The position numbers and the translations under genes are program-made. This document shows positions 5,996-51,571 of a DNA stretch of 64,000 bases, one piece after another (position 1 is the stretch's first letter; the number at the start of each line of letters is the position of its first letter). This DNA is from Pelomyxa schiedti (Eukaryota; Protista; Evosea), in NCBI GenBank assembly GCA_020536535.1, contig JAHLWZ010000676.1, positions 113,316-177,315 on the forward strand, in the 5' to 3' direction. Under the pieces are notes generated by a model. That model did not search any database. It saw nothing but the letters and a program-made list of their open reading frames with translations, and had not been told where the DNA came from.

Positions 5996-6262
5996 GGTGA
6001 TGGATATGGCTGGTGTCACAGCCTATCTTCAGTTCCCGGAATCAGCAGCTTGTGGTGATATGGCTGGTTCCACGAACCCTACGCTGCTCCCGGGGTATTA
6101 TTATTAATAATACGCAGTGAACCATCCCGGAGCCCAAATTTTGAGGGCTGTTCTTCTCAAGAAGAAATCCCTTTCGGCTCTCATTACCTTAATCACATAC
6201 GAAGGGAACAAGCAATTTTTTAAACGAAAGAAAGAAAAGGAAAAAAAAACCCCAACCAAAGA

Positions 6263-10000: not shown

Positions 10001-12163
10001 TCAAGAAACTCTACTTGCACGTGAAGTTCACCACTCCCTATTATTATCCTTGGCATTTGGTGCAATCCAACAGGAACTAGATTTAACCAAGAATACTACC
10101 CAATGGGATTCGTTGATGCTTTGGGCAGAAGAAGGTTTTAAAGATGTCTCTTCTCATTGATTGCTAAAATGGATTTTACTATACAGGACTGCACCTGTAC
10201 TACGAACATACATGGGGAGCCGATATTTCGACAAGTCAACCATATGGTAAGACAAAAAGCTCTCAATTCGCTGACAATACCAAAAAAAAAAAAAAAAATC
10301 AAACAAGATCCATACACGACAGACCAGTGGCTCTTCAAATCACAACCACTCTACAACTCTGTTGCTTATTGTGCACAACTGTCACCCCTTCTCACCCCAC
10401 TGGCTATCGAATTTTCACCTGTCACAACACCTTCCCGTACTACTTTAGCAGTCCTTAATCCAAGTGGGTTTGATAAGAGTGGTATTGTGCAGATAAGTTG
10501 GCTTAATTGCGACCCTTCTTGCACTGTATTCACATCCCCTGGCTCATCTACTGTGACACCCTCATTTACTACAACTGTCGATGGTGAGGAAGTTTTGAAT
10601 TTTTGGGCAGATAATGTTCCGTCTGTTGGAATAAGCTATTTTGAAGTAGAAACAAGCTCAGCAAAGAAACTTTACACAGAAAAGGTTGTTTATTTTTTAC
10701 TCTTTCACACTTTTTGAATGTAATAGGTGGTAACTGAACAATCATATGACACTTTGTATTACACCCTAAAAGTGGAGTCCAATGGCAAAATTAGCAGCAT
10801 TTTTGACAAGCAATTGCAACAAGAGATCGTTGAATCATCTGTTTACTCTATGAACCAATTCATTTATGTTCCTGGTAAGCACCACTCCTTTTTTCATTTT
10901 TATTCACGTACACTTCAAAATAGGTACTGACAATAGCGACCAACGAACCTTTTCCTCGGCAGTGATTACACAAACCGAAAATGATATATACGTAGAAGTG
11001 ACAATATCTTCACAGCTCTCTCCCTGGTTCTCGTCGGTTGTACAAAAAATACGCCTCTACAAAACAACCAAGTTGATTGAATTTGAAAATACGGTACTGT
11101 TTTTACATAAACTCCAAACTAAACTCCCAAGATGGAAAAACTGGATACGATATCCAAAGAAGCTCTTTATTTTGCTTTCCCATTTAATGTTGATGGCGGT
11201 GAAATGAGGTTGGAAATGACTGGTGGTGTAATGTCAGTGGAGAGAGACCAGTTATCAGGAGCCTGCAGAGACTGGATGGCAATACAGGTGATATAAACAG
11301 AGAAATAAAGAATAAAATCCTGAGAGTCTCACATCACAGGATTCAATTGGAGTAGTTTCCTCTCCATTCTCAGTGTTACTGTCATCGCCTGATACCCCAC
11401 TTTTTGTAATAGGAAAAATCAAGTGCGTACTGACTTATACCTCCCTCTCGTTAAAGCACTTTTACAGTGTCCTAACATGGCAGACCGAACTTGATATATC
11501 CAACACAACGCTATTTGCATACACCGAAAATAATTACTGGGTATAAATGTGTACTTGTTTAGGAGCCACTAACACCTGTTACCTAACAGGATACAAACTA
11601 CAAAGCCTCACAAGGAGGAGTTATCACATTCAGATATGCTATTACTAGTATGTCTGGGAGGGCCACTGACACTGATATTGTCACATTTGGACAGGTAATT
11701 CCAAATTTCAATAGTAACCAAAAAAAGAAACGAGGCACGCCAAATCAATAACTTTATCCCATAACAGAGTTATGCCCTGCCAATGCTCGGGCTTACACTT
11801 CCCAAGATAAGCACATCCACCAGCACCGATTCATCAATTTCCTTCCTCAGCGTTGTGTACTCATCAGCCACAACGACACTGTATCCCCACGCCAGGATTC
11901 TATCAGTTCTTCCGTCAGATTCCACTGACAACGGATTCTTGGTCCGGATACAGGAAACAATTGGCACAGACGCAATGGTGTATCTGAACCTATCTCAAAC
12001 TGCATTCGGGAAAGGATACCCGTCCGCACAGCAAGTGGACTTACTTGAGAAAAATGGGGTTTCTCTTAGTGTCTCGACTGATCAAAAAACAGGCAACTAT
12101 CTAGTCAAACTCTGGCTTGGACCCTATTCCCTCTCAACAATCCTCATCTCCTTCCCCAAATAA
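7015..12163 (+). CDS. Secreted GH38-family glycoside hydrolase, bacterial-type architecture, many exons
   Basis: Signal-like N-terminus; IPHSHLDIGYADLQ Zn motif; nucleophile region LITDVPGFSW; YWEDG, LYYEHTWG, DQLSGACRDW, ENNYWDTNYKASQGG. Confidence 0.85.
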
Positions 12164-12334
12164 ACCTAAAAACAAGCGCAGTCAATGGCCATGACACCAC
12201 TCCCCTGCGCTATAAACCCGCACAAAGGTTCATTCATTTTTTTTTTCACCGATGGTGCACTTCGCCAATAGTGGCAATGTGCAGGTTCGTCCGTTCCATC
12301 GAAAAAAGAAACGAACTTTTTTTCGAACGAAACC

Positions 12335-15300
12335 ATGGGTTGGGATACGAGGGGGTGTCGCCTCGCCTTGTCGATATTGTTCGCCGTTGTTCTGTGTATG
12401 CGTTGTGGCAGTTCCATTGTGACGCCTCATCATCGCCACGAGAGGGGGGACGGTCGTGATCACAGGGTACTACTGACATTGACACCATCGAAACCCACCA
12501 CGAAATATTTGCTTGCTGTTGTTCCTAACATAACTGTGGGTGTCATGTTATAGACTCAAGGGAACCGAGGGCTAGTGGACGAGTTCATTCACGTTCATAT
12601 CATACCTCACAGCCATTGTGATGTTGGGTGTGTTTTTTTTTCTGCATACACATTATGCGCGGCTTTTGGTATCTAACTTTCCCCTCCCCCATTTCATGCA
12701 GATGGCTAGAACCTGTCCAGGTTTTTTTCTCCAAAGTATTTTCTTTATCTAAATGGTTGGATGATACAGGAATACTATGACACAGAAGTAGTAAAAATCC
12801 TCAACAATATTGTGGACCAGTTGTCCACTGATACCTCAAAACGTTTTATATGGGCTGAAACAGCATTCCTCAAGATGCACTGGGACAATCCCAACACTAC
12901 CCAAGATTGGCGAGATTCTTTTTTGTCCCTGTTAAGGACAAAGCAAATTGAAGTTTTTCACTTTTACTATTGGATTCACCTCACTTTTTTCCTAGATTGT
13001 ACTTGGTGGAGTGGTAATGAATGATGAAGCTATTGTTCATTTGGAATCCTGTGTAGGCATGTGATGATTTCCCAATATATTGTTTCCAATGCAGCAAATC
13101 TGATAGATCAAATGACTGATGGACACACATGGATATCGGAGCACCTTGGTAAACGCTCTTTCACTCCCACCTCTTACAAATTCGTACAGGTGATGATGTT
13201 CTTCCTACTATTGGTATTTTGTAGAGTATTGGCCTTTTCAAACAGGTAATAGGGTGGCACATTGACACCTTTGGCTCGTCATCTGTAACACCCACATTGT
13301 GGTCCTGGTGCAACTTTCGGGCATTCTATATAAATAGGTTTGTGGTCATGAAGAAATATGTCTCCTCCTTCCACCAAATAGAATTCCAATTGAAACTCAG
13401 GAGAGCTTCTTCTCTTCACAAGGTTCCTTGCACTTTTGTTCACCTATCGTTAATTCGTTCAGGATTGGAATTTTATTGGCAGGGTTCTCCTTCACTGAAA
13501 GAACAGACATCCATCTGGACTCATGACTTGGATCATTATTTCTGCTCTCCACCAAATTGTATCAAAATCTTCCTTGTTAGAAGTATGTTTAGTTGATTTA
13601 CTTTACAGGTAACTGGGAATGGTCTGTCCGATACAACCATTTTCGATGAATTACCTTTAAACTAGGGGTGACCCGCCAGTTACTTCTGATAATATAAATT
13701 CCATAGCAAGCTCTCTTTCTGACGAGTGTCATTCCCGCATGAGCCTGTTCCAGGTGTGAGAGTATCAATCAGTATGTAGCCCTGATAACTTGCCAGGGAA
13801 ATCAATTGCTAGTTCCATTTGGTTGTACATGAGCAAAATACTGTTGGGTAATTGAAATCCAAGGTTGTGATTTTGAGTTCCAGAATACAGTTAATTTCGA
13901 TAACATGGACATACTGATGGCATACATCAATGAAAACTCTGAAAGGGTACTCTTGTGAGTATGTTGCTCTACTTATAAATCTAGTTTCGGATGGACATGA
14001 GATACTCAACCTTGAGTGAGGTGACGGACGGTATTTTGAGCCAAGTATTGACTTATCCAACCTGGACTGGTTCCTTCCACTTTCTTTTTTTCCAAAAATT
14101 ACACAAATATGTGAATGAATGCAGATGACTTCTTCTCTTATGATGACAGTCCTGGGAGATACTGGACAGGGTTCTTTACGACATGGTAGCATGAGCTTTT
14201 GAATAATATCTCATTTATACAGGCCCAATCTTAAGAGCTATGTCCGCTCTCGAATGTCATATCTTCGGACTGCTGATTTGCTTTACACCTTGTCGAAAGA
14301 GAGATCAGAATGGCAGACAGTAACCTTTGATCCGTTTACTGAAATGTAGTTTTTGCGGCAAGAAACTCGTACTGATCAGAGTTTAGATGCACATTGCGGG
14401 ATGCCCTTGACATCACTCAACATCACGACTCTATTACAGGCATCTTTTTCTACATGCACACTTTGAGTTAAATGCATTCACAGGGACAAGTCCTCCAGAT
14501 ACAAACAAAGACTGTAGTTATCTTTTTAATTTTTTTCCCGCTCAACAACAAAAGACATGGACAAGCTTCATACAGGAACACAGGCCGTAGTGCCTGTGAT
14601 TGAAACGGGCTTGAGCATTTTACTTAAAAAAACGTACAGTTCCCCGTTAGTTGACCTTTCGTTCGATCCTTCAGTATTATATTATTCACTAGGCAAAAAT
14701 TTGACGACTGCTGGTAGCTTCCCGTTACTCTCCATCCACTAACAGTAATAGTTGTTATTACTAACACTCTTGGTTGGGGGAGAAGTGAATTGGTTGGAGG
14801 GTTCCCAGTCCCATCTGCCCAAATTGAAGTCATTGATGGTGAAGAAAATTCTGTGGAAATGGACGTTCTTTCAACTGCAAAGCAGTAAAAATCCTTGAGT
14901 ACTTTCAACTTTCAATAGCTCATGGACCAATTAGAAGCCAGCTGTTCTTTAAAGTTGATATTCCCCCAGTGGGTTCAAAGGTTTACTTCGTTCGGCCAGC
15001 CACTGAGGCCCCTTACATGGACAGCCCTAAAGCCTCTCTTCAAATCGAAAATGAGTACTTTTTGATTACTTTCTCTGAAACTTCGGGCCGCATTTCTTCG
15101 TATGTTCATGCCACATGTTCCGAGATTTCCTTTTAACAAAAAGAAAATAGTATTTATAATAAAAAAGAAAAAACAACTTTTTCTGTTGATCAGAATATGA
15201 TGTCATATACTGCAATGTACCTTACTGATTCCTACATCTTCAACACAACTGAACCTGCTGTACCCATCACCAATAATCCTATTAAACTTGACATCCAAGT

Positions 15301-18945: not shown

Positions 18946-21900
18946 ATGAAGCTCGGCACACTAAGAAAAAAGAACACAAGTGCCGGTGCGTTGTGACAAC
19001 CTCCATAAAACAAATAAAATCGAGACAGTTAACTGACCCCACCTTGTTACAGCGCCTCCAGCGGCAACGAGATCTGAGAGACCTCTTCCTCCAAAACCCC
19101 AAAACAACACAGTATTAAGCGCCTCTGCACCTCTGTCATCTGTGCCGGTTGACGTACACACAACTACAACTACACATCCAGTACTCGTACTCCCCACTCT
19201 TCCCCCACGCCCGAATGTATCTGCAGATCTTAGTCAAAACGAGCACTCCAGCTCGGCACAAGCACAAACGAGACCCATTGTCTCGACTAACACTAACTCT
19301 CAATCCAGTCCTCAGACCACCACGACTACCATTCCACACGAAAAGCCTGCTGTAGTAACCCCTACTGGGGCTCAAATAGAAGCCAATTCATCACAAAATA
19401 CTCCCCCACCTACTGCAGTATCCCCTGCTGCAACGCCGTCGAACTCCACTTCCCCTTCACTCCCTTTATCCACGTCCACGTCCACTTCTGCTTCCACTTC
19501 CACTTCCACGACTTCTCTACCACCTTCCCCTACAGCTTCCCCCTCTCCGTCGGCATCAGCCTCACAAACTTCTCCCACTCATACTCCAAGACTTCGTCTT
19601 TTTAGGAAATCCACACGGCACATCTCTTCACCGATTTCAGTTCCAACAAGTACCACTACTGCAGAGAGTTCTACTGGCGATAAAGGGCAGCATTCCTATC
19701 CAGTTCCAAGTAAAGATTCCCTTCAAGACTACCCTGTGATGAGTTAGTTAATCTTATGTGCAGCGTCTTCCCATTTAAGAAGTGCCTCTGAAAATGTCAC
19801 TGTAGCAAAACCACTAGATTCTGCACGTCAGAATTCTCCACTTACTGTGTCCTCTCCTTTGTGTGCTTCGCGGCCTCGTCTTGGATCTCTCCGTGAAGAT
19901 AGCAAACTTCCTGGGGCTCCCAATTCTGATGTGGATCAAGCACCCAATTGTGATAACTGCAAGGAAAAACCTGCAAATGTCTTTTGCACGATTTGTGGGG
20001 GTTTTATTTGCCATGAATGTGATTCCGTTTGTCATGCTGCGCCGCTATTGCAGAAACATAAGCGAGTGTGGCTCGCCCTCCACTTGAAAGGCGCAGTCTG
20101 ACTGCTTCATAGGTTCCTGTCAATCAAGTCCCTAAGCATAAATATCTGTGTAAAGAACATCCCTTGCATAACCTGGAATTCTTTTGTCGCTCTGACCAGA
20201 GTCTTGTGTGTGCTCAATGCTTTGTTTCTGGGTACTTCATTTTTGTGGTGTCAACTACTCACTATGGAATATTCAGCACCCATAAAGGTCACACAATCTG
20301 TGATGTTGAAGAAGTTGCCGTGGAATTCAGAGGGAGCATCTCCAATCTCTTGAACCAAGCACAAATCGTTCAAGACTCACTTGAGGCCCATCACAGAACT
20401 CTTTCTGAAGTGTGTCTCAATTCGGAAAAAATCCATACCAAAGACGTGGACTGCATTCATGTTTATTCATACCTCTTCAAAATCACTCTTACATGAACAA
20501 GAAATACTTCAGCCATTTACAGGAAGAACTTTCAAAGAGGGAAGAATATCTAGTCGCCCAGCTACTAACGAAATCACCTATTGAAGACCTGCAACAACAA
20601 ACTACTCAAACTTCATTAATGAATGCTGGCGTGCAATCTGTTTTACGGGAGGGAAGAGCTACACTTCGCGAATGCGATACTACATTGCTCTGGGACAAAG
20701 ATGCTCTAATAAAGAAGTTGAAGAAAGTGGCTGAGATACAAATCCCTTCAGTCTCATCAACAAGTCCACCTCTTACCTCTAAATATGTACCCTAAGTTAT
20801 GCTTCAGAGGTACCTGTAATATCACTACCAGTATGTGAGGATGTTATTTCGTCCCTGGGTAACATCAAAATGTGCAGCTACAAGCTTGACTTGGGGGTTG
20901 GAGCAGACGGGACCCTGGTGAGTATTTTCCTTATCCCAACAGTTGTTAAGAAAATTGAAGATCGTTGATAAAGAGGTAACTCTCGAAGCCGGAAAGTGGC
21001 ATGAATATGTTGCAATTACAGTGAAGAAAGGTGGTTTACTTACAGCAAATGCATGGGATGGCCGTTGTGGTGGAAGACTACAACTTCGGGTTCGTGGTAC
21101 TATCAAAATTGAACAAGGAGGGCATATTACTATGTCTGGAAAAGGATATTCTGGGGGTAAAGCCATTTCTGAGTCAAATTCTGGTTTCGCTTCACAGGTT
21201 TATTTGAATTTGGCCTTTCTACATATAACTTGTTCCAGGGTGAATCTCCGGGTGGTCTAGGAGAAAGATCGGGAAAAGAAAACCAAGGAGGTGGAGGTGG
21301 AGGTTCCGCCACACCCTTGGATGGGAGCACTGGTGGTGGCGGAGGGGGGAATGCTTCTATGGGAGAAGACTCTAAACTTCCAGCTTCCCTGAAAGTGGGA
21401 ATAATTCCGAATCCCAGACCAGCGCCCGCGCCTGCAACGAACACTGGTACCTTTCCGCACCTGAAAGATTCGTGTAATGTTTTTCTTGGATAGGCCAAGA
21501 ATTAGCCGTAGGATGTGGCGGAACTACTTATTGCAGTAGATCGACTTCGCAGCTATCCATGGGGTCTGGTGGGGGTGCAGGACATCCATTTTTCAGTTCT
21601 TATGGTGAGACCACTCACTTGATAAAAATAAGATTAAAGATCAACAAAGATAGTAGTGGAATTTCTGAGTTGACCTCAACACCACGGCCAGTAAAACATC
21701 GACTGAGTACCATGTTCCTCATCAATGAGCTCTCTGGGAACTTAGAAGAAACTAACATATCCACTCCACCTGGGACTCAGGAAGTGACCAAAGACCCTTC
21801 ACCAGACAACAGTGTTACCACAGGAGGAACAGGGGGAAGAGGTGGCGGAATAATCCAAATATGTGCACAAGCTGTAGAAAATCATGGAACCATTTGCTGT

Positions 21901-34544: not shown

Positions 34545-37500
34545 ATGTCAACGGGTGGCATCGAAACCCGGCGCTCGTCGACGGGCTCGGCCCCCAAGCC
34601 TGCCGAGGTTCTCGTCGACGATCGCGAGGAATGGATCTCGCGGACAGTCGCCTACTCGTTGTTCGTGAGTCGCCAACAGGCCAGCGAGGCGCGCAGGGAA
34701 CTGCTGTCAAGTCCGCGCTCGCCCCTGCTCAATTTCATGAACGACGCCGACTCCAATCTGCTGATTGCCAACAGATCGGCCTCAGGCCCGACGCCGACCT
34801 CAATAACTCTGAGCAACGACCTCGGCGGGCTGATTGGGACGTTGGTGCCACAGTCCCAATCTGGTTCACAGAAGCCGCCTGCATCTGCATCTGCTGTCTC
34901 AAAGATTGTGATCCTCATGAAGCCTAAACAAGTGCTTCTCACAGATCAGAATATTTCCACTGCAGTCAGTGTGTGCACTTTGCCAATTTCAAGTGCCATC
35001 AGGTCACTTTCATCATTGGTGTCTGATGTATTTGCTCCACTGCTTCTCAGGTGCAACAAACATATCCACCTTAGCCATAACTTTTTCTTTTGGAAAATAT
35101 AGCTTTCTGGGTTTTTCTTTTATGGGAAGTATTTATCAATAGTTTTCGTTCTCCAATTAGGTTTTTTTCCTCACTTTACTAAACACTTTATGCAGGACAG
35201 GGTCTGAGCTTACAGTGACCCTGCAGCCACTTCTTGCACAACTTCAGTACGGGCTGTCACAAAGTGATGGAAGTGATGAAAACGATATTTCTCATATCCA
35301 CACAATTTTTGACGAAGTGGCTTTCTGGGAGAAACTTTCACAAACCCAGAACACAGTTTGTGGATTTTATTTCTTTGATTTCTTTACAACTTTGGGAACT
35401 ATAGAAAACCTCTGAACGAGCGTATATATTCTATTCAGAATTGAAGACAATTTCAAGTTCATTGATGTCAATCAAGTTAGTAGTGTAACTCTACCTCACA
35501 AGATCTTAATTTCACAAGACAAAAACCTGTGCATGAAGTGGTATCCTTGCTAGACTCTATTCAGGACACACTTGACAAAATCTGGTCTCCTTTTTTAGCT
35601 TCTGCCCTCAGGTGTGACTTTTTTTTTTTAGGAAATTGAATCAAGTCCCCTGCATTGATGAAGCAAGGATGTTACATATAATGCTCTTAATTGGAGTTGA
35701 ACTGACCAATTTTCTGAAGCACAAGCTTCCTCCTTCACATTTATGGAATAACACATATTCCATGGTATCCCTCCATAAATTAGTGTGATTACTCCCACTA
35801 CACAGACCCGAGACCACATTCAGAAGAGTCTACTTTTACTAAATAAATGGTCAAATGTTACTGATTCTTTGACAACAATTCTGTGGCCTGGATTTCCTCC
35901 TCATAAGTACCACCCCCTTCACAGAGAAATCACTCATCACCCACTTCACAGATGGGTGGGTAAAAAATTTGAGGATAGTAGCATGGTGCAATTTCGAGCC
36001 AGATTGGAAGAGGTGTGAATTTTTCCAAAATCCTGTGTTAATCGGTTTCAGATTTTAGATCTGAGAACGATGGTGGAACACATTCAAGGGCTACTGACAC
36101 ACACAGTGCCCCAAAATCCCTTCCAACATTTTTTGTCAATTGACTGTACTTTCCACTTCAATTCATACTCCACCACTTTGTGGCAGGTGAGGGTCCGAAT
36201 TTGAATTACAGTACATTAAAGTTCTCAAGGCTGTGGTGGCACACTTTTTTCAAGAGATTGAAACGTCTCAAATCAATGCTGCTCACACACTTAGGCTGCG
36301 ATTTGCTTTATTAGCCCAGCAACCTCATCAGCTGGTTAAAGAATACACAAAGTACAAAGACCTAATTGCAATTCCAACAATCTCCAAACAACTAAGTGTG
36401 TGAGTGTACTTCACTATTACACCTTTAAAAATACACTAAGCTCAAGAACGTGAAACACTCTTTGTTCAATTGCAAGGAATTATTTCTTCTACGATGACTG
36501 AATTTGACCAAGTATCAAAAGACTTCTTGGTATCCCAGAGAATTGGAGACTTTCTCCCTCTGAGTTCCGTTAGGATGGAAGAAGTAGTATTGGAGTACTT
36601 TGTGGGCCTGGTAGCATTCCCGAAATTGTTTCCCTCATTGTGTGGGTCCAAAGGCTTATCAATAAGGCATGCTATTTGTCAGACCTTTTTTGCTTATTTC
36701 TGTTCAGGTAACTGGTTGTATAGCAACTGGTGATGCAATTGTTGGGGACATGAAAGGCCTACATAGTGGGTTCTCCAGTAATGCATCACACCTTCTTAAA
36801 GCACTGAAGACTTTTCAGCGTGACAGGTTCACTGAGTGGTGCCAGGTCCCCAGAAAAACCTCAAATGATGACACTCACTAATTAAGGAATTAACTGGCCT
36901 ACTATCCTATGACTCTCAAGCACTCCTGATAAATTCTAGTGCCCAGCTCATAGAAATCGAAAATGGAGTGGCAGTTGTAAAGTTCCACAGTAGACTCATT
37001 TCTATGATTCGTGAGGTAAACATTGCCCATGTAATGATCCCTCAAATGAAGCTTGCAGGCTCGGCAATTAAGTGCTATTGGCTTCCAAGTGCCCACTGCA
37101 ATTAAGAAGGCTGCTGAAGATGCTCTGCGATATTATAGATATCCTTCTTATACATGAAATCCAATGCACAAAATCTTTCCTTAACATTTCTACGCATGGA
37201 ATTGTACTGAATCAACTGGGGACTTTTTACAACACACTTCGCACTCAAGTTTTAAAAAGCCTAAAAGGGATACTTCTTAATTTTGAAGTACCATTTGATG
37301 AACTTATTCAACACCCTCAAGGTCATTGTTACTTGCCCTCTATCTACAATAACCAGCCCTATAGCCTCTACAAAAAATTTAACATGGAAGAACTCTGTTG
37401 ATGTTGAAATTTATATTGATAAACTTCAAAGAGCTGCTGACCAGGTTTTTTAAAGCACCTTCTTCTGTTTCTAATGTAAATGAAGATTATTAGTGAGAAC

Positions 37501-40500
37501 CGCAAATTAACAAAGATTCACCAAGGCATTGCAGAGCAAGTGGCTGTATTAATGGATACAAGCATACTGACAGATTCCCTGAAGTGGGACTCCACTGTTC
37601 ATCACATTAGGGGAGTGATTGACCAAATTGAAAGAAAAGGGTACTTTTTTCTGTTATGGTACCTACTCATTTGTGTCCAGTTATCCAAATGTTCAAGCCT
37701 GGAGATATCACTGGGACCACCAATTGTACAAAGCACTGGAGCTGCAATATAAACAAGGACTGCTTAAGTTGACAGATACTGTATCCAACATATCATGCGA
37801 ACTTATTCTAAAGCAACAAATTCTTCAGTTCAGGTATTTTCCTTGTTGTTCTATTCTCAATTGAAACACTCAACAGGCCCCCTTTTGAAGAGCTGCGAGC
37901 TTCATATTACAATTTAATTGGGAAGTACATACAGTATCCACTACACTTCATTGGAGTTAGCCAGTCCACAACTAGCCCCCCTGAAAATAATATCTTCAAG
38001 GTAATTAATGCATTACCTTTGTCATCCTTAATGCTTTGAAGACCATGATTCAGAGGAATGAAAAAAGCCTTGTGGGCGTTTACAAGAAAGCTGAGGAAAT
38101 TTTTCAGCAAATACATTCTTCTAAGGACATTTTTACTGAGTGGGTTACTCTGGCATCAATACCAAATGTCGACTCTTTTGTTGCCCAAGAAATGAGTGAA
38201 ATTGAGGACTGGGAGGTTTGTAAGGATTGTCATTCTCCAGTCTGACCTTACCACAGTATAACTTCCGAATGATTAAAAAAAAAGGACGGCAAATGGACAA
38301 ACTTCCAAGTTCACTTACTGTGGCATGTGTGCGAATTTCCTTTGGTCCAGTCAAAGCAGCTATAGAACACCTTCTTCAGGCCCTTACTGAAGCTTTACTG
38401 AAGTCACTACAGGCATCAATTTTGGAAAATGTACACCAAATAGAATCTTTCCTAGTCTCTTCGCTAGGAGATCTGAGGTACCCTCTTTCAAAGTAAATAG
38501 CATCTGAGAATTTCTTAGAGAAACTCCTCTATCTCCAGAGAAGATGGCTGAATCCAATGAAATTTGTGCTCGAATAAGAGATGCCATACCACTTCATGAA
38601 AAACTTTTTCAGAAAATCGAATTGAAGAACAAGTACCAACTGATGTTTTGGCAATCTAATGGTTAAAAAAAATTTTCAGACTCCTACGCACAGTTTCAGG
38701 CCAAGGGATACCCAAGATTACAACAATCCGAACTCAATGGGCAGAGCTGGATTCTGCCCTTGGGAATCACAAGCAATTGATGGAATCCCGCATGTCTTCC
38801 ATGAAAGAAGAACTTGATTCCCGTTTCCTCAACTTGCTTGAACAAGTGAAAGCATTTGCCCTAGATTGGGTACTAAAAAATAGATACACAGTAAAAATTA
38901 ATAGAAACCAAGGAAAAATTGAAGCCCAACCAAGATGTCATACGTGATGTGCAAGCTGCAGCTGTAGCAATTGACACAATGTCTCATCTCAGAGACAAGT
39001 TCAACACACTCAAGCAGGAAGCCATTCAGCTCACCAAAGAGAGTACACAAGTTGGACTTCCAGCTCGAGACTTTCATTCTCTTGATGACCTGGAGCAAAA
39101 TATATGTGATGTATGTAGCTGCACTTTCTCATCACGACTCAGGTATGTGTAGCATGAGGCATCTTGGGATCTATACAGAACATTCCTCGAAAAGAAAAAG
39201 GAATTTGGTTCTCATCTATGGTTTTCCTTTCGATCCAGGATTGGCGAGTTTGATGACTTCCTCACATCATTCTTGGATACTGTGAAAGTTTGACATGTTA
39301 GCTCTTTAGCCAAACTTATTGAACTTGAACAGAAAAGTTTGCAACAAAGAAATCGAGATTCAGTAACGACGTTTCTACTGAATGAAATAAACACCTTGCA
39401 AGATTTTTCTAGATTACTTCTGTACTACTTCCATGAACAATACAACGCTTTCTCCAATTAATAGTCAATAAGCCCACTGAGAGGAGATGTCTTTACAAAT
39501 GAACACTGGAAAGCTTTGTTTGGACTCTTGAGCATAAGAGTTTCCTCTCCTGAGGCACTTCTTTTTTCGAACTTCCTTGAAGCTGTTGATGCTATTGTAA
39601 CCAAGTCCCCTTTGATAATTGCAGTACCCATCCCCTTCAAAAAACTGTGTTACAGTCTAATAATTTCAACCCAGCTTAGTCAACGAGCACAAGGGGAAGT
39701 GCAAATACGGGAAGCAATGGAAGAGTTGAAAGCCTGGGGAGCCACTGCAGTAATTTTTCTCATCACCCAATCTTATAACACTGCTAGGTGTTCTCAATGT
39801 ACAAGCATGAAGATTCTTTAGGAAGGGTTATCTACTTGATAAAAGAATGGACAGATTTACTTGTAAATATTGGTGACCATCAGTCCACACTGGCCTCTGT
39901 AAAAGATACTGAATACTTTGCCCCTTTTATGGATCAGGCTGCTCAGTGGGATATTGATCTTGCAGCATTGGATCTCTGCATTCATTCTCTCAATCATATA
40001 CAAAGAAAATGGGTAAAAAACAAAAAGTATGAGAGAAATGTAACTTCCACAGGTTTATTTGGAACCTATTTTTTCACGAGGTGCTCTTCCTCACGAGTTG
40101 CAGCGGTTCAAATCAATTGACTCTCACTTCACTGATATTATGTCTGACCTGCAACAGAACTCTAGGGTACTTATTGGTCTACTTCTGAATCTCATGCTAT
40201 TTAGGTTATGCGACTTATTGAGATACCAGGCATTAAAGAAACATTGCAAAGTTTAGAAGAACAATTGGAAAGGTTGGGCATCATAACCAGGCATTTTTCA
40301 AACCTTTGGCAGATGCCAAACTTCTCTTGCAAAATATCTAGAAGAAAAGCGCCTTAAGTTTCCACGTTTTTATTTCCTGGGGGATGATGATCTGTTAGAA
40401 ATACTTGGACAATCTAAAGATCCTGCTGTCATTCAGTCACACTTGAAAAAGCTTTTCCAGGGTCTTCACAATGCAAGTGCTAATCTGATAGTACTGTTTT

Positions 40501-43500
40501 ATAATTTCTGAAACGAAAAAGGTGGAATTTTCAGAGGATAAAAAAAAAATCTTGTCAATGAAGAGTGCAGAAGGTGAGAGAGTCACACTCCTGCAACCCA
40601 TCGAAGTAACTGAAAACGTTGAACTGTGGTTGTTTACGTTGTCACAGCAAATGAAAGTAACTCTCAAAGGTATTTGTATTTTACTCTCCACTTCCTCCTT
40701 ACTCTACAAATAGAGCTGCTTTTGCAAGTACTATCAGGATTTGATCTTCGAACCTGCCCTCTAAAATATATACCAAGTCAAATAATTGGTCTTGCAAATT
40801 GCATCATGTTTACCAGGCAATGCCACAATGCTATGTCTGGACAGAAGGGAAACAGAATGTAAGCCAAAGACTTATCTTTAAATCACTTTGGTTTCCCAAT
40901 TTTGTTTAGTACATTTCCTGTTCTAATGGCTGAGTTGGATCAGCTTCTGCAAAAGTATACACTGGAAGACACTGTGAAAAACAGGCTTGAAGGGTTAAAG
41001 ATCAAAGCAATTATTCTAGATATTATCCATCACAGAGATGTCGTAGAACAGTTACAAACAGCGAAGGCACGAACTAACTCCTTGAAAGAGATACAATGTC
41101 AATACTAAAATTACTTCTTTCTAGTCAGTATCACTTACCCACTGGGTTTGGTTGAAGCAGCTTCGCTACTATCTAGAAGAACGTAACTGTGTTGTCTGTA
41201 TGGGGGAAGGCTCCTTTGATTACACATGGGAGTATCAAGGGAATCCACAAAAATTGGTCTACACACCACTTACAGACAAATGCTACTTGACCCTCACCCA
41301 GGTATCAGTCAGGAAAATACATGAAAAATAACTTCTAACACAGGGAATAATGCGAGGATTTGGTGGTAATCCATATGGTCCAGCAGGTTACCTACCCTAT
41401 TATTTGAAACACCAAAACGCTTAAACGATGTAGGAACAGGGAAAACAGAATCAGTAAAAGCACTGGGACAGGTTCTCAGAAGTTTTTGTATTTCTAATTA
41501 ACATTTGTAGACCCTCGGCAGACAAGTTGTTGTCTTCAACTGTTCAGAAGGCATTGACTACAAAAGCATGGGCAGAATGTTCACAGGCTTGGTTAGGTGT
41601 GGTGCTTGGGGTTGTTTTGATGAATTCAACCGGCTTGACTTGGTGGTTTTGTCTGCTGTATCACAGCAAATTCAAGTAATCCTGCTCGTCTTTTACATTA
41701 ACTCACACCAAATAGGTAATTCAAAGCGCCTTGAAGAGTAGACTTCCCAAGGTGCAGCTCTTAGAAAATTTGATTGATGTTGACCCTTCTGCTGGTACAT
41801 ATCCTTATTTCATGCTACATTTCACCTTGATCTCTTTAGGTATTTTTGTTACCATGAACCCAGCTGGAGCTAAGTACGGGGGCCGGAGTATATTACCTGA
41901 CAATCTTAAACAATTGTTTCGCCCAGTTGCAATGAGTACACCTGATTTATCCCTTATTGCTGAAGTACAAATGTTCTGGAATGCTAAATGAATACTGATG
42001 GTATTTGAGGTTATCCTGCTGTCTGAGGGTTTCTCGTTTGGGAAAGTTCTGGGTTCTAAAGTGGTCACCCTGTTTAATCTGGCAACACAACTACTTTCCC
42101 CTCAGCATCATTATGACTGGGGACTTCGAGCTTTAAAGTCCATTTTGACAACAGCGGGTTTGACTATTCAGGTAGGCACCTCTTAGTACAAATACAATGT
42201 CCCAACCCCCACAGGCAATTAAGAAAGCTGAGAAAGAGAAGAAGATCCCTAAAGATGATGCACCATTTGTTGTTGGAAGGGATATGGAAGAACGTGTTCT
42301 CTTGCATGCACTAAAGTCCACAATCAACTCCAAGTTGATTGCCAGAGATGTGGAAACCTTCCATTTTCTTGTACGTGATGTTTTCCTCTCAGGAGGTGAC
42401 AATTTAGAGCCTGAGGTAAACAAACTTTTATGTTTAAGTTCAGCAACACTTAAAGGGTGGTGAATTGGGGCACTTCACTGCAAATGTACGGAAACATTTA
42501 AAAGCAGCCAATTTAATGGAGAACCCAAAGCAAATTGCTAAAATACAACAAGTAGCTATTCCCACAATAATCACTGAATATTTAAGTGGTACCCAGCTGT
42601 GGGAAAATCTTAATTCCAGAATGGGTGTAGTGATTGTTGGACCTTCAGGTACTGGGAAGACAACACTATGGAAGATTTTAAGGTAGCCATTCATGTCATT
42701 CTTCTTCTTTCTAAAACGTGGATAGACTTGCTTGGCAGGAGACATGGAACACCACAATAAAAATTACCACCCTTAATGCCAAGGCAATGCCCCCTTCCGC
42801 TGTTGTAGGTCTGCTACATCCTGACACCAGGGAATGGCACGACGGTGTTCTTACTGCTGCAGCCAGAATGGTAATTCGGCACATTGGTTTGGAAGAACCT
42901 AACAAACTGTCAGGTTTCCAAAGAAAGTAATGATGTACGCAACATTATCTTATGTGACAGTGATATTGATCCCTTATGGATCGAGTCACTGAATAGTGTG
43001 CTGGATGATAACAGGCACTGCCTTACACATTATATTCCTTTCCTGTCTCATGTTTCTCCAGGCTATTAACTCTTCCAAATGGCGAGAGGATCCAATTTCA
43101 ATCGAATGTTAACTTTCTTTTTGAAACACATTCTTTGAAATATGCCTCTCCTGCAACTGTAACAAGGATGGGGATGATTTTTATGGACGAGACAGATGTC
43201 GACATCAAGGTAACCACTAGGGCCTTTTAGTTTTAACCAACTGTAGGAAATTGTTTCATCATGGAGTTTGACCAAACTTCCTGATGAAACTCGGGAAAAG
43301 ACCATGGAGTGGGTCAACACATACTTTTATAGGGCACTAGATTATGTTCGACAGGTTGTTGCTTCAATGCATGTGGCCTTAGCTTATATTTTCCCCAAAT
43401 TAGTTCCCCCTTGTGGTAGAAACTACGTTAGTGGGATTAGTAAAAACTGGCTTAATCTTCATTGAGAACACAAAAAACAAGGTACAATCAAGTTATCTTT

Positions 43501-46500
43501 AATTCAATCTGAGTTTAGTAAGGGTGAATTTTTACTTGGGCTCATGAGAGGGCTTGGAAGTAACTTAGCTCTTGATAAAAGGGCACAGTTTGGGTGCATA
43601 GTTCTGGCGTGGGGGAATCTATCCCCCATTGATAGAAATGCTCCTTGGGAATGTGTTGTTGATCCAAGCACTGGCTCCATTAATGTTCACTTTTTTTTTT
43701 TAAACAAACCACCATTCACGCAAACGCAGCCTTATTCTGCTAAAATGCAAGACTTTACAGTCCGTGACCTGCAGACCTCTCCTATTGTGCACACTGCATC
43801 ATCACAGGCACTGTGTGACTCGTTAATGGTATGCTTGAAAGCATCCACGCCTTTGATTCTTGTGGGACCAGTTGCCTGTGGCAAGAGTACCATCCTCCAG
43901 TTTGTTCTCGGTCTTCATTTTTTTGTGATCACATCCAATAGAAACTGTTTCTCCCAGATGAAATCGACTACAGTGGCCACTCTTGCCTGCAATGCTCATA
44001 CCATGTCATCGGATATCATTCAAAAAATGAACCAAGTCTGTGTAATTCAGAGTTCTTCTTTGGGAAGAGTGTACAGGTTCAGGTCATTATTTCTTAGCCA
44101 AAAATTAACAAAAAAGATAGGCCCAAGGACACTGAACGACTTGTGCTTTGGATAAAAGATATAAATTTACCTAAACCAGATAACTATGAGACAGTGCAAT
44201 TGGTTTACCACCGCACTTAGCCAACAACCTTATTTGTTGTGCAGATCTCTTTTTTGCAACAACTTATCTCGTACAATGGATTCTATGATCAAGACAATGA
44301 ACACTTTACCCTTGACCGCATTCAACTTGGTCTTTCCAATTACAATTTCGTTACTGCTAATAAGTGTACGGGCAGTGTGTACAATGGCCCCCATTACTGC
44401 TGGTAGACATCCTGTTTCAACTAGATTCACAGCCAACACTGCCATCTTTTTCATGGACTACCCAAAGAAAGATCATCTCCTTCAAGTAATTGTCATATTC
44501 CATGTTCGGCCACTCTGATTCATACCCAGATATCGACTGCTTATCTTGCACCTGTAATGGGTACTTCACCTGATGTATTATGGAGACAACCAGGAAATAT
44601 TCAAAAGCTCGCCTCCACAATGCTTTCCGTTTTTAGTGAGGTTCCATGACTCTTTGTGATTCATCATAAATTCATATAGACCCAACGTCAACTGGTACAA
44701 GAGCAACAATCCCGATCACGTGTACCTCCACACTATATTTTTACGCCCAGAGATCTCACCAACTGGATCCTTGGTCTTTTGCGCTATCAGAATGAAGCTG
44801 GGACTTTTTTTGAGGTTTCGTTGCTCCTCTCTGACAATGTTGCTCACTCGGCAAGGTGTTTAAATATGAGGCGTATTGCATCTTTGCAAGCAGGCTTGTT
44901 GCTGAAGTTCATAAAGCAGCGTTTAACAGTATCATCTCCACTGTCTTAAAACGTGATTGGCAAACCACTGTTGAGTTAAAAGAGTTGTATTTTACTTCTT
45001 GGGCAGCCACTGGTATTCAGGTGACTATTTCACTCCTTTTTTAACACAGCCAGAAACTCTTGGAAAAACAAAGAAGCTGGCAAAGACAACCCAAGAGAAT
45101 CTGCATTCCCATGTTTCTCATGCAGTGGCATCCTATTCTAGGGATATTTCTCCTCTAGAAATAACATTATTCCCCGATGTTCTTACTCACCTTGCCTCTG
45201 TTGATAGGTTTTTACTTGCTTCTTTGCCTCACTAATCTTAAGCAGAGTTCTGTCCACCCCTGGTGGTTCTCTTTTACTTGTTGGTAACACTGGAGTTGGA
45301 CGTGGCACTGCAGTGGCTCTCTCAGCCTACATGCACCGCATGCAAGTTTTCTGTCCTAACACAACACATCACTACAACATGAAGGCTTTCTCTTCTGATT
45401 TGAAAAATGCATGACCCATCTCAGCAGGAAAAATATATCTAATTATAACACTAGGCTCTGCAAGTTGCAGGAGTTGATGGAAATCCAGTTGTGTTTATTC
45501 TTGAAGATCACCATATGCATGTGGATTCAAATTTTATAGAATGCATTAACAGTTTGCTTTCTGGAGGTGAGGTATGAAACAACATGTTTTCAATGATTCA
45601 GAAGCAAATAACACCCAACCAGGTCACAGGACTCTATTCCCCATCCGAGATTGAAAACATTCAGCTCACACTACAAGACCAGATTGGTGGTGCAGGGTTT
45701 TTTGGTGGGGTCCACCAATTCTTTTTAAGCAGATTGAGGGCCAATCTTCATGTGGTTGTTATCATGAATCCTCGAAACAGTGACTTCCTTATCAGGTTTT
45801 CTTATCCCAAATGGGTCGACAATAATCTTCTGTAGATGTCAAACGAACCCGTCACTATACAGTAGATGTTCCATTCAGTGGTGGGATAAGTGGCCTGCAG
45901 AAGTAATGTCATACCTCCCATCAGTGATCTTAAATGGAGTGTTGGACTCAAAGAAGTAGAAACCAATCGTCGGTTTTATCCCAATAATATTGTACCAGGA
46001 TTTCAGAGTTGATAGACCAAATTCTGCAAATCCAAACAACGATAGAGGTCCGAGGATCAAGTCCACGTACATTCCTCTCACTGGTTGAAGCCTTCAAGAA
46101 GGTAAAATCACTGCATGTTCCTTTCTTAGAGTGTAGATATACACAGCAAAAAGCGAACAATCACGCCAAGAGCTTCTAAACCTAAGAGGAGGATTGGCAA
46201 AGCTTGCTGAAGCCTCGGGGACTGTTGAAACTCTCACAAGAGATGCCAAAACGAAACAAGACAAGCTCACCCACTCTAGAAAACAAGCAGACAATGTATT
46301 TTTTTTCTGAAATAAGTGGAACATACCTCAATCGCTTCAGATCATGAAACAAATAGAGGACAAAATGAAATCGGCTGCTGCATCACAACATACAATGCAC
46401 CAACTAACAGAATCCTTGGCTGTGGATCGCGCAGATGCGTCTCAAAAAAGAGATGCCATTGCTGCACAGCTCAGTAAAATACAACCGATACTTGATAATG

Positions 46501-49500
46501 CACGCTCTTCTGTGAACTCAATATCAAAGAGAACGATTGAAGATTTACGTGCCTTTCGAGCTGTTGCGTATGTTAGGCTCCAACTTAAACCCCTTGATAA
46601 CCCTGGTGTAGACCAACAATTATGGACATCATGGAAGGAGTGGTTCTGCTACTGGGAGGGAAAGAGATATCCTGGAATGCATTTAAAGTGTTTCTTGGGC
46701 AACCAGAAGTTCTTAACAAGATTGTTAACTTTGATCCTGCCAATGCATGCCTACTCAATGAGTTTTATTTTTAAAAAAATAAGAAGTGCTCAGGTAAAAC
46801 TTGACAACCGACTGGCTGTAGAAAGAATTTTGGAAGAAAGGAAATCATCTTTTGAGTCAAAGAATGCACTACACGCTAGTAGTCTAGCATTACCACTTGC
46901 TGAAGTGAGTCCCTTTTACATTTTAAATGCTCCCTACTTACTTCTTTGTAGTGGGTAAAAGCAGTAGTAACTTATTCAGCTGTCAAACACAAAATTGCCC
47001 CCCTTGAAGCCGAGCTCGCCCAAGCAAACAAACGGCTAGATACTACAGAAAATCGGTTTAAGGCACTCGAAGTGGACATTCAAAGAGTATCCCCATTTCT
47101 TGGAAGCTGCCTTTCCAACTGTGCATAGTTGAATCAAGAGATAGAGAATATTCGAATGCAACATCAGGAAATTACACAAGAAGCCATGAGATTTCAGCTA
47201 GCACTGGAAGAAACTGAGAAGGCATGCACAATAATGTAAGTGAGTTAACTCATGAATACAAGGTTTTGGGGAGGTCAAGCTCTCTGGTAGAGCAATTGAA
47301 GGTTGAAGCGTCGCGGTGGTCTGCTCGGGAGCATTCGTTGTTGGCTATGTCCCAATCCCTTCCTACAGCTTCTCTTTTAGCTGCAGCTTTTGTAACGTAC
47401 ATGGGATGTGTACCAGAGGACATACGAGCAGAACTGGTGGCACGGTGGAAAGAGTATGATATAACCTGCACCTCTACACAACTCAATACCTTTGAGGATT
47501 ACTGGGTATCAATCATGGTCGTTTACTCAGTTCATGGGTACTGAGACTGACCTGGTCAAAATGAGGAATAATGGGCTACCTTCTGATGACCTGTCTGCTG
47601 AGAATGCCTTGATTACTCAGTGGTCTCCATTGTGTGTTCGAAAAGTTGCGGAAAGTATTAACACCTCCCAAACAAAGAGTTCCTTTCATTATTGACCCTT
47701 CAAGTACTTCTATTGGATGGCTTGGGAAACATCTTGGTGAAAAAGTGGAAATAATGACCCAAGACGACCCAAGATTTGTTCACAAGTTAGAGTTGGCACT
47801 GCGTTTTGGTAGAACCCTACTGATACAGGTTTGTGTCATTTCCTTTTTTGACAGTGATCACTTCTTTTTTTCTTAGGAAGTTGACAACGTGCACCCTATA
47901 CTGATTCCAATTCTAAGGAAGCATTTAATGCGACAGGGCCCACAACTTACAGTGCAAATAGGTTCTTTGAAATTGGAAAACAATTGCTTATGTGTGGCTA
48001 CAGGTGAGAAATTAGTAAATTATTCAGAAGAGTTTAAGATGTTCCTGGCCACCCGCCACCCTCAACCCGACCTTCCTCCTGATGTTAGGCCTCTTGTCTG
48101 TGAGGTAGAAACCCAAGCCCACAAAAAAGAAAAACACTCATCTCCACTTGTAGGTAAATTTTACTGTGACCAAGTCTGGTCTAGAAAATCAACTTCTTGG
48201 AGTAGTTCTACTCCATGAAATGCCAGATTTAGAACAGAAAAGGGTACAAGCCTTGGTTTCTGAGGAGAAAAACAAGATGCAATTAGCTTCCTTGGAAAAC
48301 CAAGTACGCTAGCCTTGTATTAATTGGTTGCTGATGAAGTTAGCTTCTTTCAGAGTTGGCTAAAGCCAAAGGAGACATACTGGAAAGCCAAGAACTTATA
48401 ACTACCCTAAAAAATACAAAATCGATGTCCGTTGAAATTGAGGAAGCACTGTCTCTTGCACACAATACACAGGTTCACTTCACTCCATCTCTTCCATAAG
48501 CTAGGATGAAAACTCCCGAAAAAAAAAAAAAAGGCAACTCTAGAAAAAGAACGGAATGGTTTCAGACCCATTGCCAAAGCTGGTAGTGATTTGTTTTTTG
48601 CATTGGCGGATCTCTGCAAGGCATGAGTCTTGTACTACAAGCCCAAGTAACTATTTCCTCAGATTAACCATATGTACCGCTTTTCTTTGGGCTGCTTCTT
48701 GCCTCTTTTCCGTCGTGCACTTGCGTCAGCCTCTGGAAACCCATCTGATACAAGGAATCACATAGATCTCGTTGTCTCGTCACTGGAAAAGATTGTCTTT
48801 GAATATGTGTGCAGATCCTTGTTCAAAGCTGATAGACTTGTTTTTGCTATGCATTTAGTACATGCCACCAAGTCACACTTTTTCCAACCCAAGGTGAGGC
48901 CTTCTTCATTTTCCCTGGTCCAATGACAAAACAAAGGAATGGGAGTATTTCATAGGACAGATATCAGAAACTAGTTCTCGAAGTGACAGCTTTCCCTCTT
49001 GGGCACCCAAAGATCGGCGTAATGCTTTTACAGAATTGGAGGTATGTTGTGGTGCTCATGTCCGTACTAAGAGCGCCACAGGCTTTATTTCCCAGAGTTA
49101 CACAATCTTTGCAACTGAGTCAAACAGAAGTTTGGGCAAGTTGGGCAGTGTCAAGCACATGTGAAGTTGACTGGCCACCAAGGATAAAATCTAAATCCAC
49201 AGCATTTCAGAGACTCCTACTTATAAAGGCTTTAAGACCTGACAGACTAGAAAGCGCTAGTAAGCCTTTCCACTCTCCCCAGATATTTATCTGAGGATTT
49301 CCAGTGAGCAGCTTTTGCAGTGAAGCTCTTGGTCTTAGCACACTTCAACCATCTGCACTGAACCTGCAACGTGTGTTTAGAGATGGGGAAACAGAAGCAA
49401 CCACCCCAATTTTACTCATTACAACCCCTGGGGCTGACCCTTCTCACGACGTTGAGGTGCTCGCAGAAGAAATTTTGGGAAGCGATTCAGCTCATGCAGA

Positions 49501-51571
49501 TACACCAACTCTGCTGGCTCTCGCCGTAGGGCAAGTTCAGCAAGAGCAAATTCTCGAGGCCCTCCACACAGCACGAACTCGTGGTTCATGGCTTTTATTG
49601 AAGAATGTCCACCTGGCAGTTGCTTGGTTACACTCTATTGATGCAATTCTCGCTGAAGCTTCTCTTCCCCACGAAAATTTCAGGTTAGATGATTGCCTTT
49701 AAACCTGGAAGCTTATGTTCTTCCTTTTTCCCCTTGACAGGTTGTGGCTGACAAGTGAGTCCCACGAAAAAATTTCTCCTATTTTACTGCAGTCCAGCTT
49801 GAAAATTACATACGAGTCTCCTCCAGGAAAGCCATCATATTACATTATCATTTTTTAAATGCCCTCAGGTGTAAAGAAGAACCTAGAGAGAACTTACGCA
49901 GGCTGGTCAGCAGACTACATATCCAAGGGATCTGTACTTTATTCACAGTCTTTGTTCGTGCTTGCCTGGTATCTCTGTTTCTTGTGTTCTAGTTCTCTTA
50001 TCGCTCACCCAGGTTTCACGCTCTCCTGCAAGAACGTAGGAATTTTATTCCCCAGGGGTGGACCAAATTCTATGAATTCAACGAGTCTGATCTCAGAGCA
50101 GCTTCTGAGATTATCGAAAAGCTTTTGCAGTCACAAGTACCTCTTTATAGACTGTTGTTGTATAAAAATGACACGTCCCAAAGCAACCAGATTGGGCAGC
50201 AATACATGGACTTCTGGAAAATGCTGTTTATGGTGGTCGTGTAGATAATCCCTATGACTTCCAGGTTTTACAGCTGCTGCTTCGTATGTACTTCAACGCA
50301 GATATTCTTAGCAGTACCCCCAAGAGATCACTCACTTCAAGGGTAGATAGTTTGACACCTTTTTTCATTGTCACATCCCATAGATTGAACTTCCTCGAAG
50401 CAATATTCATAGTGATTATTCTGCACTGATTGCCCGGCTTCCTCCTGTTGATCCTCCACAGCTGTTTGGTCTCCCTCTGAACATTGAGAGATCTGTTCAG
50501 AGAACAAATGGGGCCCGTATCGTATCCCAGTTGCAGCTAATCACTGCAACCTCAGTGCAACACTCTACACAGATGGCTGCAAGTGCTGAATGGCGCACGT
50601 CCCTTGAACCCCATGTAACTTCCTGGAAAAAATTGATGACACAGAACAGTGCACTGTTGATGGAGACTGCTTCTAGTGATAGTATGCAGAAGATCTTTCT
50701 CCAAATCTTACCACAATCCAGGATCCCCTGTAAATGATGATGCGTTGAGATGTTTTATCTACTTGGAGCTTGAAAACGCCAGAAATCTAATCCGTCTTGT
50801 TGACTCTAGTTTATCATCTCTCAATGAATTCATCAATGGAGCAACAGCGTTATCCCAAGAGACATACCAAGTAGGGCAACAGTTGCTTGAAGGGAAACTT
50901 CCAAGTTCCTGGGGCACACATTGGGAGGTTACCACTCACACATTCTTTTCGAGCTCTGATCTTCATCTTTGCAGTGCCCACCTGAAAACCCGCACCTATG
51001 GCTGCGTGAGCTTGTTAGAAAAACCGTCGCCCTGGCTCAACTTCACCAAAGGGACAATCCACTATCTGTGCCAGTCAATATTGGCACCTTCTTCCGGCCA
51101 TCTACCTTCATTGATGCCCTCAGACAACAAACAGCTCGAGCTGGTACTTTTTTTGTTGCTCATGGAATTTTTGTGACACTTCCCACAGGGCGTTGTGCTC
51201 TCGATTCCCTCAAGTTGACATGCACATGGACGTCACTCTCCAGCTCCACAATTTCTTCAAGTGCTCCACCAAGTACCACATCCAACACAGCAATGATAGA
51301 GGGCCTATTGCTCCAAGGTTGCTCATTCGATTCCGGAAAAATAACAGAAGCTCAGCCCACAGCCCCGGAGCTACTCCACATGCCTCTCTGCAACCTCTCA
51401 TGGATTCCACAAGCAGAAGCTCCACCTCCCACCAATACAATAGTGGAGGTTCCGGTGTATCATAACACACAACGGGAGAAGTTAGTCACTGTTCTCCCCA
51501 TGCCCTGTGCACCCCCAAAGGAAAAATGGCTCCTTGCCGGTGTAGCACTTCTTCTCACAGAAGAGTTTTGA
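34545..51571 (+). CDS. DYNC2H1: Cytoplasmic dynein-2 heavy chain (retrograde IFT motor), about 90 introns
   Basis: [17 protein letters not shown]; AAA1 [67 protein letters not shown]; AAA2 GPSGTGKT; AAA3 GPVACGKS; AAA4 GNTGVGR; DALRQQTAR. Estimated spliced length of about 4300 aa fits the family. Confidence 0.95.
37139..37193 (+). other. U12-type (minor spliceosome) AT-AC intron, 55 nt
   Basis: 5' ATATCCTT, branch box TTCCTTAAC at 37177-37185, 3' TTTCTAC; removal gives [14 protein letters not shown] and skips an in-frame TGA. Confidence 0.9.
49827..49868 (+). other. Putative GA-AG intron, 42 nt
   Basis: Removal of GAAAGCC...CTCAG restores the conserved [13 protein letters not shown]; retention introduces an in-frame TAA. 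Confidence 0.7.

Follow-up and report, generated by a model that had tools for sequence, protein, structure and literature searches.

In animal and plant genomes, 0.4 to 0.9% of introns are of the GC-AG type, beginning with GC instead of GT and ending with AG (PMC1557818). These are U2-type introns, and they are known to compensate at the remaining donor positions, a better match elsewhere offsetting the mismatch with U1 small nuclear RNA (snRNA) at intron position +2; homologous introns have also been observed to switch between GT and GC donors (PMC1557818). A further departure is found in Oikopleura dioica and Eurytemora affinis, species with short introns and with GA-AG donors in an AG|GAA context; in E. 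affinis, GA and GG donors are reported for ~12% of introns, and in one of the two species GA-AG with read support makes up 3.2% of splice sites (PMC7072748, PMC5714493). For Pelomyxa schiedti, the published annotation, which was made with an Augustus/PASA/EVM pipeline, lists 149,016 introns, of which 98.41% are GT-AG and 1.59% GC-AG (PMC8887013). Here we describe a cytoplasmic dynein-2 heavy chain gene with eight GC-AG introns, located in a 64,000-nt stretch of P. schiedti DNA (contig JAHLWZ010000676.1, G000:C676:113316-177315; hereafter the window, whose own numbering is used for coordinates below).

The assembly searched comprises 52,367,397 bases in 5337 contigs; the published P. schiedti assembly, 52.4 Mb in 5337 scaffolds, was built from whole-genome-amplified single cells (PMC8887013). 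On its full-length DYNC2H1-type similarity, the window gene (34679-51565, plus strand, as are all features of the window described here) is identified as encoding a cytoplasmic dynein-2, or intraflagellar-transport (IFT), heavy chain. Exons were searched singly against the databases, and the joined model was aligned locally to reference proteins only: human DYNC2H1 structures in PDB were matched by one exon stretch, the Pfam domain DYNC2H1_AAA_dom by another exon, and the gene aligns over residues 16 to 4239 of the dynein-2 reference P0012. The model contains ~92 introns with a median of 43 to 44 nt; introns of this genome vary little in size (38 to 57 nt, 5th to 95th percentile). After intron removal the coding sequence is intact across ~4200 codons, and no stop codon interrupts its spliced alignment, end to end, with five dynein-2 proteins. 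A paralog on another contig (C828) scores 6695 against P0012 and the window gene 6682; because its outgroup similarity equals that of the paralog and its model is free of stops, the window gene shows no visible decay.

An earlier note on this DNA, made from the letters alone, had proposed GC-AG introns for 8 of roughly 90 introns of the gene, needed to restore the dynein frame and motifs, and for one intron of a mannosidase gene in the window. All nine segments do begin with GC, and indeed with GCA, and end with AG; they measure 41 to 58 nt, and three of them (40473, 45409, and 46745) follow exonic AAT, as had been claimed. We aligned the gene with our own spliced protein-to-DNA dynamic programme, whose donor penalty is 12 units for GT and 18 for GC, to five full-length dynein-2 heavy chains taken from a representative-protein search. 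The alignment reproduces exactly all four GT-AG junctions proven by contig joints in RNA run X1 (43355-43403, 43482-43522, 43685-43729, and 44815-44855), and the full gene model holds 8 GC among 92 introns; the strictly supported set consists of 5 GC and 41 GT introns.

Support from all five references was obtained for the introns at 41067-41124 (58 nt, phase 0, AAG|GCACGA), 43015-43061 (47 nt, phase 2, CAG|GCACTG), where splicing restores SLNSVLDDN|, 45409-45454 (46 nt, phase 0, AAT|GCATGA), 46745-46793 (49 nt, phase 0, AAT|GCATGC), and 48621-48662 (42 nt, phase 0, AAG|GCATGA), where splicing gives DLCK|INHMYRFSL and retention would lead directly into an in-frame TGA. Four of the five references support 40473-40521 (49 nt, phase 0, AAT|GCAAGT), which yields LFQGLHN| when spliced, and 47222-47262 (41 nt, phase 0, AAG|GCATGC). 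The remaining segment, 36667-36707 (41 nt, phase 0, AAG|GCATGC), lies in the tail, where conservation of the protein is poor, has the backing of two references, and is a probable GC-AG intron. None of the eight can be read through in frame, since in seven the length is no multiple of three and the 42-nt segment carries the TGA. Models restricted to GT donors score ~300 units lower per reference, cross stops at 45409 and 48621, and break conserved motifs, with SLNSVLDDN|, for example, turning into a gapped read-through. When any donor dinucleotide was admitted at the GC penalty (15 non-GT dinucleotides possible), the consistent non-GT introns, found with at least three of four references, were five GC and two GA. 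Other GC calls were set aside: those at 35074, 37081, and 42176 had one or two references or poor flanks, 37081 being better read as an AT-AC intron, and the call at 49831 is better explained by a GA-AG intron.

The letters at the donors were compared with DNA contigs over window positions 42800 to 48799. In the contigs of the source study, which come from three libraries and have depths of 29 to 53, all five donors in this interval (43015, 45409, 46745, 47222, and 48621) read GC; the same contigs differ from the assembly at several single bases elsewhere. These five donors are thus not assembly errors, and GT, which the earlier note had named, if present in raw reads, as an outcome that would speak against it, was not seen in the contigs at any of them. 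Together with the alignments and the intron positions of the paralog, this confirms the GC-AG introns as genuine at the level of DNA and homology.

The paralog is a second intact dynein-2 heavy chain gene (G000:C828:66001-96000) that has ~60 to 66 of ~90 intron positions in common with the window gene, in the same phase. Each of the eight GC-AG introns in the window gene has a counterpart of matching position and phase in the paralog, and every one of these counterparts is GT-AG; that of 36667-36707, for instance, is 5998-6039 (concatenated coordinates, as for the other paralog introns). The paralog in turn has GC-AG introns at 12232-12273, 13879-13918, and probably 5551-5592, the last two of which correspond to GT-AG introns of the window gene. 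Because the GT/GC pairs are reciprocal, switching must have occurred in both copies since the duplication, as between homologous introns of animals and plants (PMC1557818). The excess is smaller in the paralog, where GC introns number 3 of ~92, and non-GT donors number nine in the window gene versus three in the paralog.

The earlier note had described the GC donors as weak. The opposite was found: they are among the best donors locally. In a pool of 149 GT and 9 GC donors from the two dynein-2 genes, each supported by at least three references, A stands at +3 in 9 of 9 GC donors and in 51% of GT donors (Fisher p = 0.004), and G stands at +5 in 8 of 9 and in 26%, respectively (Fisher p = 0.0003). 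The remaining positions of the GT donors are hardly constrained (T at +4 in 40%, T at +6 in 46%, G at -1 in 60%), and GT donors of this genome have almost no consensus beyond GT. Nor do the GT donors with which the paralog occupies the GC sites of the window gene (GTATTCG, GTGTCTT, GTGACAC, GTTCCTT, and others) carry the compensating +3 A and +5 G. The donor profile suggested as a check in the earlier note, run here on the two dynein-2 genes, shows GC donors enriched for exactly these two bases. The compensating consensus differs from that of animals and plants, which is GCAAGU (PMC1557818), in being mostly GCAUG, with a yeast-like AUG at +3 to +5 that fits a U1 with A at position 5.

We consider it likely that these are ordinary, compensated U2-type (major-spliceosome) GC-AG introns derived from GT-AG introns in an intact and transcribed dynein-2 gene, and that their accumulation is a gene-level cluster. 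Since each GC intron sits at a GT-AG position of the sister copy, the most likely origin would be post-duplication mutation of T to C at +2. The resulting GC may have been tolerated where the rest of the donor was unusually good, carrying A at +3 along with G at +5, for the most part as GCAUG. Judging from the snRNA genes, such donors would pair with one of three types of U1 5' arm and with a standard U6 ACAGAGA box. Recognition across the whole of the tiny intron probably contributes as well, the GT consensus being so slight.

A variant U1 or U6 had been suggested as the basis of altered donor recognition, and part of this suggestion holds. There are 25 U1 matches in the genome, 18 of them above the Rfam threshold, and the 5' arm could be read in 24. 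Eight copies have the standard arm ACUUACCU, 14 (four of them low-scoring) have ACAUACCU, with A at position 5, and two (G000:C804:115512-115670 and G000:C919:35771-35933, one of which scores above the Rfam threshold) have ACGUACCU, with G at position 5. Position 5 faces intron position +4, so that the A5 form is the fitting partner for GCAUG, as the G5 form is for GCACG and the standard form for GCAAG. No change was found among the 24 readable arms at A7, the base that faces +2; variation is confined to position 5, and the ACAGAGA box of U6 is canonical. Because the variation faces +4 and A7 is constant, the variant U1 does not license C at +2; it may help to account for GCAUG being a good donor. 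Lineage-wide alteration of donor recognition, as put forward in the earlier note, is thus apt insofar as P. schiedti is unusual in general, in its near-absent GT consensus, its tiny introns of uniform size, and the three forms that its U1 5' arm takes, and inapt insofar as no adaptation to GC was found. The data do not support a new splicing mechanism or a spliceosome adapted to GC donors. It may be added that the G5 arm would pair with C at +4, and that GTAC ranks high among the sequences with which donors of the dynein genes begin. The U1 genes lie in divergent pairs ~130 to 300 bp apart (contigs C455, C448, C171, C290, C966, C716, C1082, and C22), in most of which a standard arm stands beside an A5 arm.

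The frequency of GC-AG introns elsewhere was estimated from five other genes, using the same alignment programme and well-supported introns only: 2 to 3 of 78 introns in the dynein-2 paralog, 1 of 14 in a dynein gene on C275, 0 of 14 and 0 of 7 in dynein genes on C871 and C140, and 0 of 35 in a midasin AAA ring (C805:52864-62029). This amounts to 3 to 4 of 148 homology-supported introns, or 2.0 to 2.7% (95% interval, 0.4 to 6.8%), which is compatible with the annotated 1.59%. The window gene, with 8 of 92, exceeds the annotated rate (binomial p = 1.2e-4) and that of the other genes (Fisher p about 0.02 to 0.03), although a look-elsewhere effect may account for some of the difference, the finding having been picked from many windows. 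One gene at ~9% in a genome at ~1.6 to 2.7% can be set against the 0.4 to 0.9% of animals and plants (PMC1557818). The data do not support a rate of 9% for the lineage; the concentration is real and modest and belongs to the gene. The high lineage-wide rate of the earlier note, which had itself named a genome-wide fraction near 1% as telling against it, is accordingly not borne out. A codon-usage intron finder that allows any donor dinucleotide was also run over ~200 kb and was discarded as a rate estimator: codon bias is weak (0.16 bit per codon), the finder over-predicts, with hundreds of antisense "introns," and it made false GC calls within conserved coding sequence (C828 20724, C140 16987, and window 13057, for which there is a GT alternative at 13051-13094).

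Several points weigh against ordinary compensated GC-AG introns clustered in one gene. The DNA comparison spans five of the eight GC donors, with 36667, 40473, and 41067, as well as the GA donor at 49827, outside it. No RNA junction was found at any of the eight GC donors (0 of 8), RNA contigs covering one of these introns, and that one, 48621-48662, is unspliced in the sole RNA contig that crosses it (48559-48799 and beyond; 284 nt, depth ~4). The intron at 36667-36707 is backed by just two of the five references. The intron at 47222-47262 has a rival donor, GTAAGT, 14 nt downstream, which would give a phase 2 intron at 47236-47273; the phase 0 reading is preferred because the intron of the paralog is in phase 0. 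Lastly, the published 1.59% is derived from annotation and may under-call GC-AG introns, and the sample of 148 introns is small and dominated by dynein paralogs.

This last point bears on the possibility that recognition of +2 is relaxed across the lineage, so that GC-AG and GA-AG introns would in truth be several times as frequent as 1.59%, having been missed by prediction run without hints. We regard this as unlikely. The two dynein-2 genes jointly have 11 GC among 184 introns (p = 2e-4 versus 1.59%), a conserved intron position of the window gene is occupied by a GA-AG intron, GT donors show very little consensus, and the annotation was made by Augustus plus PASA and EVM, all of which would agree with such a relaxation. 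Against it, midasin has no GC among 35 introns and the three other dynein genes have 1 among 35, the sampled genes apart from the window gene stand at 2 to 2.7%, statistically compatible with 1.59%, and adaptation to C at +2 is seen in none of the U1 copies. The strong compensation at +3 and +5 would moreover be needless if +2 were free. Frequent non-GT donors, at ~10% or more of introns genome-wide, were not seen, with 3 to 4 of 148 in the five genes and 1.59% in the annotation, a small sample that includes no RNA tally.

RNA contigs span about an eighth (~12%) of the 42800 to 48799 interval. Given the four spliced GT-AG introns elsewhere, retention of 48621-48662 may point to a lower splicing efficiency of the GC intron. 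A bolder reading can be framed, in which the GC and GA donors mark slowly spliced introns that limit the output of the dynein of ciliary transport and, more broadly, the constraint on +2 in Archamoebae is far weaker than the annotation suggests; we hold it to be rather more doubtful still. If its broader part were true, the share of non-GT donors would be severalfold higher and concentrated in weakly expressed genes.

Another reading, in which the GC segments are spliced poorly or never and the gene either has its output throttled through retained introns or is decaying into a pseudogene, appears improbable. In its favor, the sole RNA contig over a GC intron keeps that intron, whereas splicing is seen at 4 of 4 GT introns with coverage; the frame would be lost whichever of the eight were retained; and the window copy has nine non-GT donors versus three in the paralog. 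However, assembled contigs drop rare forms, and a single unspliced contig at a depth of ~4 is therefore no proof of absent splicing; the ~4200 codons are intact and as similar to the outgroup as those of the paralog, and the GC donors hold compensating bases. An artifact of single-cell amplification or assembly, by which a true T appears as C in the GC donors, is barely credible, since, even though the assembly derives from whole-genome-amplified single cells, such errors would have had to strike +2 of eight introns, mostly in a GCAUG context, and three DNA libraries that differ elsewhere agree on GC at 5 of 5 covered donors. Regarding the RNA-proven introns, 43685-43729 is 45 nt long, in frame, and stop-free, yet it is spliced in RNA, and open reading frames alone consequently overestimate exon length in P. 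schiedti.

As ordinary compensated GC-AG introns, the eight introns and their paralogous counterparts show cleanly, within one genome, how paralogs can differ by a GT-to-GC switch at the donor that is compensated at +3 and +5. They also have a practical bearing: gene finders that accept GT-AG only would mis-model this protein of 4200 residues at ten places (eight GC-AG, one GA-AG, and one AT-AC intron), and a re-annotation of P. schiedti should admit all three classes.

The GA-AG intron of the window gene (49827-49868; 42 nt, phase 1, CAG|GAAAGCC...CCCTCAG|GT) is the sole AG-ended cut that gives ESPPG|VKKNLERTY, and the paralog has a GT-AG intron (19090-19127) at the same position and phase. 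Its CAG|GAAAG context resembles the AG|GAA context of the GA-AG donors in the short introns of O. dioica and E. affinis (PMC7072748, PMC5714493). P. schiedti differs from these species in that one GA-AG intron is confirmed and GC-AG introns are near 2% genome-wide.

The AT-AC intron (37139-37193, 55 nt) is of the U12 type, with the 5' end ATATCCTT, the branch box TTCCTTAAC, and a terminal AC; as read from the sequence, its removal gives ALRYYR|, in agreement with reference P0012. Genes for U11 (G000:C820:10548-10683) and U12 (G000:C475:61363-61517) snRNAs are present in the genome. A U12-type reading of the dynein GC introns was rejected, their donors being GCATG, GCAAG, GCACG, or GCACT, with neither the ATCC donor nor the TCCTTAAC branch box.

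The mannosidase intron (14440-14483; 44 nt, phase 1, CAG|GCATCT) belongs to a GH38 alpha-mannosidase gene, the GH38 N-terminal domain being found in the neighboring exons. The claim that it splits HHDSITG agrees with our reading of the sequence, in which splicing gives HHDSITG-TSP and no in-phase GT donor lies nearby; a PDB search with the 21-residue exon that ends in HHDSIT returned no match. The donor GCATCTTT and a TTAAA ~12 nt before the 3' end are faintly U12-like, and this could be a U12-type GC-AG intron.

Two of the contigs examined show unusual gene structures. The dynein paralog at G000:C275:60001-80000 has an open frame of 1268 codons and far fewer introns than its relatives; its one good GC-AG intron, CAG|GCAAGTCC, lies at 11526-11566 (reverse-complemented coordinates). 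At G000:C794:70744-80423, midasin-like AAA domains occur in very long intron-free open frames (2266 and 3865 codons), in a genome that is otherwise packed with introns; these frames could be of foreign origin or recently acquired.

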